Below, one piece after another: positions 12,186 to 49,290 of a DNA stretch of 64,000 bases. The translations under genes were made by a program, and so were the position numbers. Each line of letters opens with the position of its first letter. Positions within the stretch are counted from its first letter, which is position 1. This stretch comes from Piromyces finnis finn (lineage: Eukaryota; Fungi; Neocallimastigomycota): assembly GCA_002104945.1 (NCBI GenBank), contig MCFH01000027.1:186001-250000 (forward strand). The letters are read 5' to 3'. Below the pieces are notes generated by a model. That model was not told the DNA's origin and searched no databases. It saw only the letters and a list, made by a program, of their open reading frames with translations.

Positions 12186-12257
12186 AGGGGCGTTCCGGAT
12201 TTGAACCGAAGACCTATTGATCTGCAGTCAATTGCTCTACCGCTGAGCTAACACCCC
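12186..12257 (-). tRNA. tRNA-Cys(GCA), intronless, 72 nt
   Basis: Reverse complement GGGGTGTTAGCTCAGCGGTAGAGCAATTGACTGCAGATCAATAGGTCTTCGGTTCAAATCCGGAACGCCCCT folds into a full cloverleaf with a GCA anticodon, TTCAAAT T-loop and U discriminator. Confidence 0.97.
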
Positions 12258-13739
12258 TTTCTCTTACTTTTGATATAAATTGAAATTAATAAATATGAAA
12301 TTATAATATTAATATAAACTAATCCTCAAAACAACTTAAAATAAATAATAAATCATAATAATATTTAAATATTTAATTAAAAGTATAAAATTATATATTA
12401 AAACTCAGTTTAAATTATATTTTATTATAAAATAAATATAATATAAATAATATTTTAAATAGCTAAATAGTGTTATATTAATTAAACTAATTACTTTAAA
12501 ATAAATTGTTTATTTTTATTTATTGTTCATTATTATTTTAAAACATATTAATATTTTATTTTAAAAAGTTAAAATAGAAAGAAAATTATAAATACATGTA
12601 ATTATTTCCTAATTTAAAGAAAATCAATCAATACTTTTAATAAATTTATTAAATAAAAAGTTGATTCAAAAATATATTTTAAGATTGTGTTTTAAAACAT
12701 AACTTTTATATTTTTGTTAATAATTGTTATGTTTAATTAGAATATCTCAAATAATTCTATAATAAAAATTAATTTTAAACACTTTTCTCTTATTAATTAA
12801 TTGATAAGAATATTATCACTTTTATAATTAATCAATTATAAATTAAGGTAATATTAAACGCTTATCAAATTTGGTGGAGAATCCTTTAAAGGCCGGTGAA
12901 GCTAAGTATTAATATTTACTTTATAAATTTATATATATATATAAAAATGCAACATAAAATTAAAAATTGAAAAATAAATTAAATTATATAATTAATAAAT
13001 AAATTTAACATAAAAATTCAATAATTACACGTTAAAATAATAAAATATATATGTGATAAAAAAAAATAATTAATAGTAAAAGAAATAAAAAGAAATATGT
13101 TATAGAATAAAATATATATTAATAGTGAATAATAATATTTAATAACAATTATAATAAAATATATGGAATTATATAAATACATTTATATAAGTGATTTGTA
13201 TACATTAATTGAACAATTGAAATATAAAATATACAAATAATAATAAATAATATTTTAAATATATAAATTGTTACGTGATTTGATATAATAATTAAATTAA
13301 AAAAAATTAACAATAAAATAAATTATATTATGCAAGATATATTAAAATAATAGAAAATATAAAATATATATATATAAACTGAAATTATATAATTATAAAT
13401 AAAATAGTTAAGACACTAATAAATATTGAATAATAATAATAATAATAAATATAAAAGGATAAATAACAAAAAAAAAAAAAAAAAAAAATAATTAATAATT
13501 AATAATTAGTAATAATATTGAAAATATAAATATTTGACGATTATATTCTAAGACAATAATAATAAATTATAAAAACTTATCATTTAATAATAGTATAGAC
13601 AATAATTATTATCAAAAATATCAACAATAATTAATTAATAAAAAAAATAATAATAATAATTAATAAAATAGGAAATTATTTAAAATATAAAATATAAAAT
13701 ATATAAGAAATAACATAATATATACTAATAGTACAGAAA

Positions 13740-14888
13740 ATGGACAACCAGACAAAAATTATTACTTTTAATAGATTACCTATATTAGGCGAATCAAATA
13801 TATCTTTTGACTCATGGAAATTCTCTTTTGACCATTGGTGTTCTACATTCAAGATTATTGAAGAAGCGGAAAAAATTGATTATTTATTAGCAATAACTGC
13901 GAATGTGGCCAGAACAATTGTATATAATTCTTTAAATAAAAGCAGTCCAGATAACTATGAAACAATTTTAAAGAATCTCAGTAAACATTATAAGAAAACA
14001 TCCTCCAAGAATTCAAAAATCTTAGAACTCTCTTCTATTACAATAAAAAAAGATGAAAGTATCTCTGAATTTGATTTAAGATTCACAGAATTATTAAATC
14101 AAATAAATAAAAATGTCACATTATCAGAATTAATTATAACATCTTATTATATTAATGCTTTCAGAAACTGGGAAAAGATATATGAAAATCTTATGGAAGA
14201 AGAACCAATAACCTTGGAAGACGCCATGAAAATAACTTCGAAGAAAGAAAAGATAATGAACCTAATGAAAGAAAATAAAGGAAAGGCAATACCCTCTGGA
14301 ATAAACAAAGAAAAATACAATAAATTAAATAAGTTTAATAAATTCCAAGAAAATACAGATCATAGTGAAATTATGTACAACACAAAGAATAAAGTTAGTA
14401 CATCTTATCTATTACCAAATACAAGTGGAAACAATGATAAAATTAAGAAGATGCACAATAATAATTACAATACATATAGAAATTATAATAATAGTAACAG
14501 ATATGCCTCTAACTTCAATAATTCAAATAATAATCCAAATTACAGAATTTATAATAATGAACCAAATTATGATTACCCTAACAATAAAAACGGTTATAAT
14601 AATTATTATCAGAATAACAACAACAATGATAATTTAAATAATAATTATAATAATAAGATAATTAATAATGAACAAAGAAGTAACTATTATAATAGAAACC
14701 AGTTTAATAACAGATTGGAAGAAAGAAGAAATATATTTAAAAATAATACTGACAACAATGATGAAATTCAAAAGTTAACGCAAAAATTGTCAGAACTTAA
14801 GATAAACTTCTGTGCAAATTGCTTACGTATCGGTCATCAAGACTTCGAATGTCCTGAAAGTTATGATGAAGAAAATTATTTAAACTAA
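13740..14888 (+). CDS. gag: Gag (382 aa), Asn-rich linker, CCHC knuckle
   Basis: CANCLRIGHQDFEC; homologous to the ORFs at 28827-29669 and 36718-37686. Confidence 0.9.
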   Translation: MDNQTKIITFNRLPILGESNISFDSWKFSFDHWCSTFKIIEEAEKIDYLLAITANVARTIVYNSLNKSSPDNYETILKNLSKHYKKTSSKNSKILELSSITIKKDESISEFDLRFTELLNQINKNVTLSELIITSYYINAFRNWEKIYENLMEEEPITLEDAMKITSKKEKIMNLMKENKGKAIPSGINKEKYNKLNKFNKFQENTDHSEIMYNTKNKVSTSYLLPNTSGNNDKIKKMHNNNYNTYRNYNNSNRYASNFNNSNNNPNYRIYNNEPNYDYPNNKNGYNNYYQNNNNNDNLNNNYNNKIINNEQRSNYYNRNQFNNRLEERRNIFKNNTDNNDEIQKLTQKLSELKINFCANCLRIGHQDFECPESYDEENYLN

Positions 14889-47365: not shown

Positions 47366-49173
47366 TATAGGTAATGAAATTAATAAATATAAAATTATTA
47401 TTAAACCTGATTTTTATGTAAAAGTTTTACTAAACTTATAATTTAATATTAAAATATTAAATTAAATAAAAGATTACAGATAACTAGGTTAGAAAAAATG
47501 TTTTATTAAAATAATCTTAATTGTTTTATAAATGAATAATAATTAAATTATGTATTATAGTTAAAATAATTTCTTTTTATTTTATTTGAAGAGTATATAT
47601 AATAATAAGATTATTTAATAGTAATACTTGTTAAGTATCAATAAGGTAATAATCTTTACAAAGATTTAATTCATAAAACTATTCTAAACTATTTATACTA
47701 TTTGTAATTTTACATTTAATAATAAAATAACTTTTTAATACATGATTATTTTTTATAATATATTTTATAATACTAAGGTTAAACTTAAGACTTATTACTA
47801 ATTATTAAAAATAACTATTGCTTATATATTCATAATATTAATTATTTCTTAATTATAATATAATTCATTGAATATAATATTAATAATTTATAATCTTTTA
47901 ATTCAAAGATTATAAGTTACGTTATTGAAATAATTATTATAAAATAAAGTTAATTAATTCCGGAAAATAATTTTAATTTAATTAAAACAATAATTTATAT
48001 CCTTTTGGGTGAATGATTTATGTTCAATACATCAGGGGTGATCATTCTCTTAATAAACAATTAATCATTACTAACAAAATATCTTTAAATTGGAATATCT
48101 CGTGAACCAGCAGAGATATCGACCTGATTTTAAGATATGTTGTTTATCTCAAGCGTGGCTTTCTAACGAACCCACAATCTCCCAACCATAATTTCCCAAA
48201 AATCGTCATTCGTTAAGGAGATACATATGTTTTTCCTAATTTAATTTTGACGATAAGGGTTAAAATTATTTGTTATAAAAATATTAAGGGTTAAGGTCAT
48301 ATCTTAACCTTTTCTAAATTTTTTTAAATATTTCTTAATATAATTTTATAATTTATTTGAAAATAAAATATTATTGATTTTGAAATTTTATAAGTAATTT
48401 CACAATTTCAAGTGATCTTGAAATTGCAGATTCCACTAGTATTCGTGACATTTTAAGTTAACCCTAAAAGTAACTTAAAATGAGTTATAGTTTAATTAAG
48501 TACTTTACCAAAATTCTTAAATAAAATTAATCTTAAACACTGCATATATTTTGATTATTAAAAGAAAATAATAAACTTTAATTAATCGAGATCAAAATAT
48601 ATAACTTTTGTTAAATTAATTGTTAAATTAAATGTTTAATAACTTCTTTAGTAAATTACACTTTAAAAGTAAACAAATATAATAATTCATGTTATAAAAT
48701 AATATAATTAAACGCTTTTATTAAAATATTAAAAATATTTATTACTTTAATTAATTGTAAAATAAACAACTTTTTATATTCTTTAACTTTTAATGATTTC
48801 TTTTATTGTTATTTTTAATTACTTTTACTACTTTTATTGTAAATAGTTTAAATTTAAAATAAAATATAAATACATGTAAATATTCTTATTTTAATGATAA
48901 TTATTATTATTAATAAAGAATATATATAATTTATTTTTATAATTTTAATAATCATTTTAATAACTTAATAAATAAAATTTTAAATATTTAAATATTAGAA
49001 AAACGAGTGTTTCTAATATAACAATTTAGTGTTGTAACAAAACAATTTTATTAATTTTTATAAAAACAATTTCAAATTTTAATTCATATAATTTATATAG
49101 TTATAATTAAAGATATAATATAATAATCACTTTTTGAAGTAAAATTCAAAATTAAGATTATAAAATTATATCA
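47366..49173 (+). mobile_element. Diverged solo LTR-A with a nested inverted LTR-D
   Basis: Degenerate start TATAGGTAATGAAATT; ends TATCA; many substitutions versus 41542-42352. Confidence 0.85.
47417..48450 (-). mobile_element. Nested solo LTR-D, inverted and diverged
   Basis: Reverse complement of 2592-3891; TSD TTTTA at 47412-47416 and 48451-48455. Confidence 0.9.
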
Positions 49174-49176
49174 TTT

Positions 49177-49290
49177 TGATACTTTGAAATTATTATCTTA
49201 ATTCTATAAATGAATATAGAAAGTAATAATATTTGTATCTAAAATTTAATAAATAAAAATAAAGAAAATAAAATAATGATTTTTATACTT
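49177..49290 (+). mobile_element. Start of LTR family H (right end not defined)
   Basis: TGATAC after a TTT spacer; first ~100 bp match 34261-34365. Confidence 0.65.

Follow-up and report, generated by a model that had tools for sequence, protein, structure and literature searches.

The window analyzed here, a 64,000-nt stretch of the genome of the anaerobic fungus Piromyces finnis (contig MCFH01000027.1, positions 186,001–250,000), holds a 37-kb array of retrotransposons with long terminal repeats (LTRs); the array starts 13 nt upstream of a tRNA-Cys gene. We conclude, with a probability of roughly 0.88, that the array is a chronological insertion stack produced by position-specific integration upstream of a gene transcribed by RNA polymerase III (Pol III). 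An earlier reading of the window, made from its letters alone (the sequence-only reading), had placed the 5′ end of a minus-strand tRNA-Cys at 12257 and the first LTR at 12271; ARAGORN and Rfam confirmed the gene, and the LTR start was the same. Outward from it follow twelve top-level units, here U1–U12 (Table 1). Elsewhere in the genome, an LTR terminus lies 11–16 nt from the first nucleotide of the tRNA (+1) in 42 of 56 tRNA flanks, where about 4 would be expected by chance, and this recurrence, together with the target duplications and the order of nested insertions, carries the conclusion.

Results

Position of LTR Ends Relative to tRNA Genes

We searched the whole assembly (56,455,805 bases in 232 contigs) with the Rfam tRNA model, obtained 63 scored genes, and took 2 kb per side for 60 tRNA loci (cited by L number), in which ARAGORN found 100 tRNA genes. 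Downstream dicistronic members and identical flanks were dropped, leaving 56 nonredundant upstream flanks, including that of the window's tRNA-Cys and covering Arg, Glu, Gly, Trp, Ala, Thr, and Cys genes; stack depth at the other loci was judged within the 2-kb flanks. LTR ends were scored by terminus motif and by coverage profiles, because BLAST alignment ends and loose regular expressions were too noisy in AT-rich DNA. Termini numbered 4, 9, 2, 8, 13, and 6 at spacers of 11, 12, 13, 14, 15, and 16 nt, compared with a background of 0.62 per position farther upstream, and several of the remaining flanks carried the same LTR ends with a decayed terminus. The motif-free measure, coverage by dispersed repeats as a fraction of loci, was 0 at ≤7 nt upstream, rose to 0.66 at 19 nt, and reached 0.8 at 100 nt; downstream, it was 0.02 across the first 30 nt. 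The earlier proposal that several families share one site defined by a Pol III gene is supported by these counts.

We refer to this site as slot 1. Its termini outside the window belong to the window families A, B, C, D, U2, U3, U9, and X, with B occurring both ways round, and also to families E, F/G, I, and J; the start of family C, for instance, faces tRNA-Gly at spacers of 15–16 nt. Each group keeps its own register. Family E lies at 11–12 nt in either orientation with 5-bp duplications, families with TGATA…TATCA ends lie at 13–16 nt (mode 15) with 4-bp duplications in the clear cases (CAAA, AAAT, and CTTT), and F/G lies at 14–16 nt. The sequence-only reading had all full-length units pointing away from the tRNA. 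Of the 12 units in the window, 11 do so, U8 pointing toward the tRNA and the 5′ half of U3 being inverted, but genome-wide it is a bias and not a rule: among families of known polarity, cases with the 5′ end facing the tRNA outnumber the reverse by about 3:1.

At one further locus (L022), an LTR end lies 28 nt before a tRNA-Arg gene, within the tRNA-Glu gene that normally precedes it and of which about the last 18 nt remain. We also looked beyond P. finnis. Eight metagenome contigs that encode homologous pol proteins carried no tRNA gene, the contigs being too short. A metagenome scan for the 5′ end of tRNA-Gly returned a single contig, Ga0138321_10010537 (L076 1–170), in which an LTR-like end ...TTCATTCTTTAACA lies 15 nt upstream of tRNA-Gly(TCC) and resembles, without being identical to, the G-family terminus. 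This one contig is suggestive only of a slot conserved in other anaerobic fungi.

Target Duplications and Order of Insertion

The nucleotides beside the LTR end vary from locus to locus. Innermost solo LTRs are bracketed by 5-bp duplications of AATTA (L006), AAAAT (L017 and L018), AAATC (L029), or GATAA (L024) and by 4-bp duplications of CAAA (L019) or AAAT (L053), and the tRNA-Glu flank that is filled in L024 is empty in L005, L007, L011, and L033. It is the distance to the tRNA gene, not the target sequence, that sets the site. Because the duplications are diverse and paralogous flanks occur both filled and empty, a simple preference for T tracts, which the sequence-only reading had itself named as a competing account, is excluded; the window's T spacers reproduce the T-rich flank of the tRNA-Cys gene itself.

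The order of insertion can be read at several loci. In L006, L017, L018, and L029, an inner solo LTR with its own duplication lies between the tRNA and an older LTR, which would sit at a spacer of 13–15 nt without the inner insertion. Overall, 8 of the 19 resolvable innermost units abut an older LTR, each flanked by its own duplication. The window preserves the same kind of record. The U6/U7 spacer (CTTTTTT), 32 kb from the tRNA, equals the U1/U2 spacer and holds the C of the tRNA-proximal ttaCTTT; therefore, U6, like U1, entered at the 13-nt register and duplicated CTTT. The empty flank cttacTTTTTT, with unit 3 at a 16-nt spacer, is regenerated as had been reconstructed earlier, given duplications of 4 bp by U1 and 5 bp by U2. 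The bracketed inner units, the letters of the U6/U7 spacer, and the offsets of the K and M families described below support the push-down order that had been proposed for the array.

Two of these loci, L017 and L018 (tRNA-Arg, contig C176), share the older LTR, the flank, and the AAAAT duplication and carry an ∼496-bp E solo LTR in opposite orientations. Either two independent insertions occurred at one nucleotide position in paralogous loci or the segment was inverted.

A Second Slot for Families K and M

K ends lie 64–67 nt from tRNA +1 at ten other tRNA genes (L007, L021, L028, L032, L045–L048, L056, and L060), inside LTRs of at least six families. M (TGTGAAGAT...CTTAACA) ends at the same distance at five loci (L004, L023, L040, L045, and L053). 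Both mostly have the 5′ end toward the tRNA and lie 51–52 nt inside a slot-1 LTR. These offsets recur in the window, where U6 is interrupted by K at 52 nt, U11 by an inverted K at 51 nt, and the 5′ LTR of element B by M at 51 nt, as well as just to its left, where K lies 52 nt into a G-family LTR (L066). An offset of 51–52 nt added to a spacer of 13–15 nt gives 64–67 nt, and it follows that each host LTR held the innermost position at the time of the K or M insertion; outer LTRs that bear K or M are now up to 35 kb from their tRNA.

The 1.0- to 1.3-kb insert in U6, in U11, and at 2592 was considered as a miniature transposable element with inverted ends and rejected, since it is a solo LTR of K present in both orientations. 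Arrays of 8- to 14-bp tandem repeats within LTRs and 5′ leaders (3306–3731, 20241–20578, and 34991–35396) alter the length of near-identical LTRs, and copies of the K LTR measure 1035, 1117, and 1300 bp.

Lineages and Integrase Ends

In U1, U2, and U5, Pfam matches along the open reading frames (ORFs) place gag, protease, reverse transcriptase (RT), RNase H, and integrase in that order, with integrase last. The best sequence match in the Protein Data Bank is Ty3 Gag-Pol 7q5b (3e-103 for U1 and 1.5e-137 for U2). The LTR pairs of U1, U2, U3, U5, and B are 98.3–100% identical, a TGG-type primer binding site (PBS) lies 2–4 nt past the LTR in U1, U3, and U5, a purine run lies ahead of the 3′ LTRs, and the target duplications are of 4 or 5 bp, as listed above. 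By their sequences, U1, U2, U3, and U5 are classed as Ty3/gypsy (Metaviridae) elements.

The sequence-only reading had spoken of about ten unrelated families. The twelve top-level units do comprise nine LTR families (A three times and D twice), but not all are unrelated: the pol proteins of U1, U3, and U5 are 70–83% identical (70.5% between U5 and U1), which puts them in one clade (clade I), and these elements have TGATA…TATCA ends in common. U2 pol has only 30% amino acid identity to clade I (U1 and U5), and the integrases of K and U2 share 37% identity. Protein comparison thus points to at least two deep Ty3/gypsy lineages.

No chromodomain was matched by Pfam in the pol ORFs of U1, U2, and U5, and no residues are left past the C-terminal domain. 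An AlphaFold2 model of the last 198 residues of U1 pol, built with 30 homologues (mostly from metagenomes, one named after an Orpinomyces assembly), contains a long helix and a single SH3-like barrel, after which 14 disordered residues form the tail, at a predicted local distance difference test score of 74.6; its fold matches were to integrase core and C-terminal domain structures only. U2 ends 11 residues after SH3_Tf2-1, and its alignment with Ty3 stops at residue 1447 of 1547, before the Ty3 chromodomain. The integrases are, thus, predicted to end in a single SH3-like domain, without a Ty3-type chromodomain, as judged from the model for U1 and from domain matches and alignment for U2. U1 integrase is nearer in sequence to prototype foamy virus (PFV) integrase than to Ty3 integrase.

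Composition of the 37-kb Stack

We set unit boundaries by self-comparison of the window and inspection of each proposed edge. All twelve previously proposed starts were reproduced, as were the 3- to 7-nt T-rich spacers and the one deletion junction. Every unit starts with TG and ends with CA, bar U11, the start of which is decayed. From U1/U2 to U3/U4, the spacers read CTTTTTT, TTTTT, and TTTT; there is none at the U4/U5 deletion junction; and from U5/U6 to U11/U12, they read TTTT, CTTTTTT, TTTT, TTTT, TTTT, TTTT, and TTT. The state of the units varies with distance from the tRNA, U1 and U2 being intact, U3 rearranged, and U5 truncated, followed by solo LTRs and stubs, which accords with the insertion order.

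Table 1. Features of the window and the adjoining K element end (window positions unless an L number is given)
Feature	Position	Strand	Remarks
K element, 3′ part of full-length copy	1–3891	+	Integrase ORF 99–1667 (Pfam integrase, SH3_Tf2-1); 3′ LTR 2592–3891
K element, 5′ LTR	L066 2954–3988		Left of window; within G LTR that follows U9-family 3′ LTR after TTTT
Family-A LTR remainder	3892–4648	+	From LTR position ∼52; right of K
B, nonautonomous LTR element	4654–10313	+	gag 6564–7379; protease-only ORF 7538–9367; LTRs 98.3% identical
M solo LTR	4705–5848		Nested 51 nt into B 5′ LTR
X, solo LTR	10318–10887	+	
Family-C LTR	10892–11885	+	3′ end truncated
RT remnant	∼11890–12140		Reaches 3′ side of tRNA-Cys
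tRNA-Cys(GCA), anchor	12186–12257	−	ARAGORN; Rfam RF00005, 67.9 bits; sequence
13-nt spacer TTTCTCTTACTTT	12258–12270		tRNA +1 to innermost LTR (TGATA at 12271); sequence
U1, intact clade-I Ty3/gypsy element	12271–19373	+	Points away from tRNA
U1 LTRs	12271–12867, 18777–19373	+	596/597 identical
U1 ORFs	gag 13740–14888; pol 14900–18763	+	Pfam gag, RT, RNase H, integrase
U2, intact clade-II Ty3/gypsy element	19381–25581	+	Ends TGTAAG...ATTACA
U2 LTRs	19381–20247, 24715–25581	+	867/867 identical
U2 single fused gag-pol ORF	20638–24702	+	Pfam Ty3_capsid, RVP_2, RT, RNase H, integrase, SH3_Tf2-1
U3, rearranged clade-I element	25587–34256	+	LTR pair 565/565 identical
U3 LTR piece	25587–25899		
U3 18S rRNA fragment	25900–27108		
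U3 inverted 5′ half	27109–30332		
U3 LTR piece	30333–30584		Followed by pol 3′ half
U3 3′ LTR	33604–34256		
U4, 5′ stub of D-family LTR	34261–34345	+	Ends at deletion junction; homology to U12 continues to about 34366
U5, clade-I element, family A	34346–42352	+	Start ∼34346–34366; Pfam
U5 LTRs	34346–34681, 41542–42352	+	5′ LTR cut to last ∼336 bp; 334/336 identical
U5 ORFs	gag 36718–37686; pol 37980–41528	+	Gap between gag and pol
U6, family-A solo LTR	42357–44290	+	Split 52 nt from start by K solo LTR
K solo LTR (TGTCACG...TTTTACA)	42409–43525	+	Nested in U6; target duplication TTTTA; slot-2 insertion
U7, solo LTR	44298–44791	+	494 bp; first ∼50 nt resemble family A
U8, family-B solo LTR, reversed	44796–45415	−	99% identical to 9694–10313 (reverse complement)
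U9, solo LTR	45420–46198	+	Family of 3′ LTR of element left of window (L066 2138–2903)
U10, family-C solo LTR	46203–47361	+	90.6% identical to 10884–11885
U11, family-A LTR	47366–49173	+	Start decayed to TATAGG; inverted K solo LTR 47417–48450 nested 51 nt in
U12, D-family LTR stub	49177–49290	+	Outer end of stack; 87% identical to U4

The inversion in U3 takes in the LTR tail, PBS, gag, and pol up to residue ∼548. At one breakpoint sits the 18S piece, 1209 bp with 100% identity to the rDNA units with which this contig begins, and the second LTR piece is displaced so that it now adjoins pol. This structure arose either by aberrant reverse transcription that switched onto rRNA or through an assembly error. 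An ∼800-bp repeat (31542–32342) splits U3 pol between an ORF ending at 31624 and an ORF starting at 32587; it recurs reversed at L067 4123–4925, 10 kb left of the window, with 98.6% identity.

A Neighboring Stack and the Surrounding DNA

On the 3′ side of tRNA-Cys, a second stack of the same polarity, also with T spacers, fills positions 1–11885. The two flanks of its K element, ∼7.9 kb at full length, disagree: a G LTR contributes its first 52 nt on the left, and an A LTR from ∼52 lies on the right, with TTAAT on one side and TTTTA on the other. The mismatch indicates a recombinant of two slot-2 K copies, with the DNA between them lost from the stack. The gag ORF of element B is a Ty3-type capsid, and U8 is a solo LTR of this family. 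B is nonautonomous, since it has neither RT nor integrase; it is nonetheless present in the tRNA slot at several loci and in either orientation.

G+C content in the window is 14–37%, and a T5 run directly follows the 3′ end of tRNA-Cys. Repeats found elsewhere in the genome end near 49.5 kb, and the sequence beyond is not repeated, as judged by repeat coverage. About 8 kb past the outer end of the stack lies a pair of GH6 cellulase genes with CBM10 dockerin repeats (57045–58523 and 61735–63204, both minus strand; 85% DNA identity), and a further RT fragment lies at 55272–56396. The two cellulase genes and the G+C content are in keeping with an anaerobic gut fungus.

Discussion

Positions, duplications, order, and family relationships are shown at these loci, and they are what a simple cycle of insertion would produce. 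In slot 1, at least two deep Ty3/gypsy lineages with a dozen LTR families would enter at a site measured from the tRNA gene, in family-specific registers. Because the target duplication would rebuild the tRNA flank, the next element would enter at the same place and displace the older ones outward, leaving duplication-sized spacers between LTRs. K and M would enter at slot 2, 64–67 nt upstream and ∼51–52 nt inside the LTR that was then innermost. Decay would rise with distance, inner units remaining intact and outer ones becoming rearranged, truncated, or reduced to solo LTRs. By analogy with Ty3, the integrase may be tethered to the Pol III preinitiation complex, with TFIIIB placed by TFIIIC; the interface would have to differ from that of Ty3, because the integrases here have no C-terminal chromodomain. 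Were TFIIIB to span −15 to −32 relative to a start site ∼12 nt ahead of the mature end, slot 2 would lie beyond its upstream edge.

Several points weigh against this account. The TFIIIB tether is argued from analogy, and the chromodomain "ruler" of Ty3 is absent here. The order of the array is known from the assembled contig alone, and LTR divergence gives no ranking of U1–U5, since the pairs have only 0–2 differences (one in U1, none in U2 or U3). The 56 flanks come from tRNA genes sampled for their high scores, with few isoacceptors among them, and are not the whole set, and some tRNA genes are unoccupied (Leu-CAA and several Thr-TGT). The enrichment that had been anticipated at Pol III genes was found at tRNA genes; no LTR lies in the slot at the 5S genes (one unit type, in the rDNA repeat, with one common flank) or at either of the two U6 snRNA genes, which share a TATA-like motif, a result that, with so few independent targets, speaks neither for nor against targeting of Pol III genes in general. 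Last, the 14 kb to the left of the window contain no tRNA gene, and therefore, the neighboring stack has no visible anchor. The sequence-only reading had held that T-spaced stacks commonly lacking a Pol III gene would speak against it. We found one such stack, yet one with the K and M offsets of 51–52 nt, and these slot-2 signatures point to growth at a tRNA gene here as well; its anchor is either farther away or was lost by rearrangement.

That same stack, together with the T-run in every spacer of the window, speaks for the view that elements prefer T tracts or LTR ends and that the tRNA is incidental. This view is already largely refuted, and we give it almost no weight. Other tRNA genes have AATTA, AAATC, GATAA, CAAA, or CAGTC-type flanks at the duplicated site; across more than 10 LTR families and seven tRNA species, LTR ends keep a fixed distance to tRNA +1, with nothing comparable downstream; and the unanchored stack bears the marks of former tRNA adjacency in its K and M offsets and of rearrangement in its recombinant K. 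That the array is wholly or partly an artefact of assembling repeat-rich long reads is very improbable, despite the odd structure of U3, where rDNA-identical 18S sequence stands beside an inverted half-element. The same junction grammar occurs at dozens of independent loci on many contigs, each junction joins different families through duplication-sized spacers, and the nested K offsets are internally consistent; within U3, the inverted half is not a duplicate of the direct half, and the break falls exactly at pol residue 548, unlike the palindrome left by a missed adapter. It is just as hard to credit broad integration followed by selective retention in harmless places. The genome has gene-dense parts, with the GH6-CBM10 genes 8 kb beyond the stack, and regions upstream of tRNA genes are thought to be safe havens (PMC5006619), but selection cannot yield a 5-nt window with registers of 11–12 vs. 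13–16 nt nor a second window of 4 nt, and the youngest copies, those with identical LTRs, are already in the slot.

A different objection accepts the targeting and disputes the tether. Contact could be made through TFIIIC, through Pol III subunits, or through a nucleosome boundary or DNA shape that the Pol III complex imposes. Ty1 integrase, for example, binds Pol III subunits. Such a tether would suit integrases that have no vestigial chromodomain of the kind by which Ty3 touches Brf1, the proximity of U1 integrase to that of PFV, and the two discrete slots (∼−15 and ∼−65) with their family registers, which suggest more than one contact geometry. However, Ty1-type binding to Pol III gives a broad periodic window and not one of 5 nt, and the narrow window at ∼−15 matches that of Ty3, Tj1, and DGLT-A (PMC5911963). 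We consider a tether other than TFIIIB unlikely, although it deserves to be kept in view, and retain insertion guided by the Pol III complex through TFIIIB as the preferred explanation of the stack. A wider generalization is tentative, and we would give it a little less than even odds: nearly every tRNA gene may be a two-register pad (∼−15 and ∼−65) for several deeply diverged gypsy lineages that, without the chromodomain ruler of Ty3, would have come to read the Pol III preinitiation complex in their own way, in which case the stacks would amount to hundreds of ordered and mutually independent records, and the relative timing of all LTR family bursts could be read off them.

The textbook case of safe-site choice by a transposon is integration at a specific position near Pol III genes, and to our knowledge, its structural basis is understood for Ty3 only. 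The kind of targeting described here is already known. What appears to be new is the phylum, the near-saturation of tRNA genes, and the depth and order of the stacks, as well as one slot common to deeply diverged lineages with their own registers and a second exact slot for LTR elements. An early-diverging phylum with a shared slot, a second slot, and no Ty3 ruler offers a natural test of whether TFIIIB tethering arose once or repeatedly and of how registers are set. The time-ordered stacks, combined over all tRNA genes, could yield a relative chronology of transposon activity. The stacks also matter when genomes of anaerobic fungi are assembled and annotated: tRNA genes there signal nested repeats that extend over tens of kilobases beside cellulosome genes. 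Elements that enter a single predictable and harmless site could be turned into tools for integration in organisms that at present have no genetic methods. We found no published report of such targeting in Piromyces, Neocallimastigomycota, or anaerobic fungi generally, in a search that left subscription journals mostly outside.

Targeting of tRNA genes by Ty3/gypsy elements is known for Ty3, Ty3p, Tj1, Tyl3, Ylt1, Tyl6, Beta/Tca8, and DGLT-A (PMC5911963, PMC4600332, PMC5006619), and Ty3, Tj1, and DGLT-A insert ∼15 bp upstream of tRNA coding sequences (PMC5006619, PMC5911963, PMC4600332). Ty3 of Saccharomyces cerevisiae is the closest comparison. Its site lies ∼15 bp before the mature tRNA 5′ end (PMC5006619), 2–3 bp upstream of the point at which transcription begins, where the C-terminal domain and the vestigial chromodomain of its integrase bind TBP/Brf1 of TFIIIB; residues 440–504 form the vestigial chromodomain, which contacts Brf1 and acts as a ruler (PMC8632968). 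The P. finnis elements resemble Ty3 in their gypsy gene order, in a window of a few nucleotides upstream of the tRNA that is used in both orientations, and in a short target duplication, which is 5 bp in family E. In contrast to Ty3, at least two lineages (30% pol identity) and a dozen LTR families use one slot, about three-quarters of the sampled tRNA genes are occupied, and stacks reach 12 units and 37 kb. Furthermore, the integrases have no C-terminal chromodomain, the 5S and U6 snRNA genes are unoccupied, and the host is no yeast but a member of Neocallimastigomycota.

Tj1 of Schizosaccharomyces japonicus, Tyl3, Ylt1, and Tyl6 of Yarrowia, and Beta/Tca8 of Candida albicans are likewise gypsy elements, seen or demonstrated to insert ∼1–30 bp upstream of tRNA genes; clustering at tRNA genes is recorded for ten Tj families, and Tj1 has also entered a 5S gene (PMC4600332, PMC5911963). 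For these elements of ascomycete yeasts, the papers cited here describe neither head-to-tail ordered stacks spaced by duplications alone nor a second fixed slot (PMC4600332, PMC5911963). DGLT-A of Dictyostelium discoideum shares with the elements studied here the gypsy type, the lack of a chromodomain, and insertion in either orientation upstream of the tRNA, at 13–33 bp with a mean of 15 (PMC5006619, PMC5911963); it differs in its wider window, in its amoebozoan host, and in no longer being intact in D. discoideum. For slot 2, the nearest analogy is the second, distal position of Dictyostelium TRE5-A, ∼48–50 bp upstream of the tRNA, compared with 64–67 nt for K and M. TRE5-A is a non-LTR element that uses target-primed reverse transcription, whereas K and M are LTR elements with integrase.

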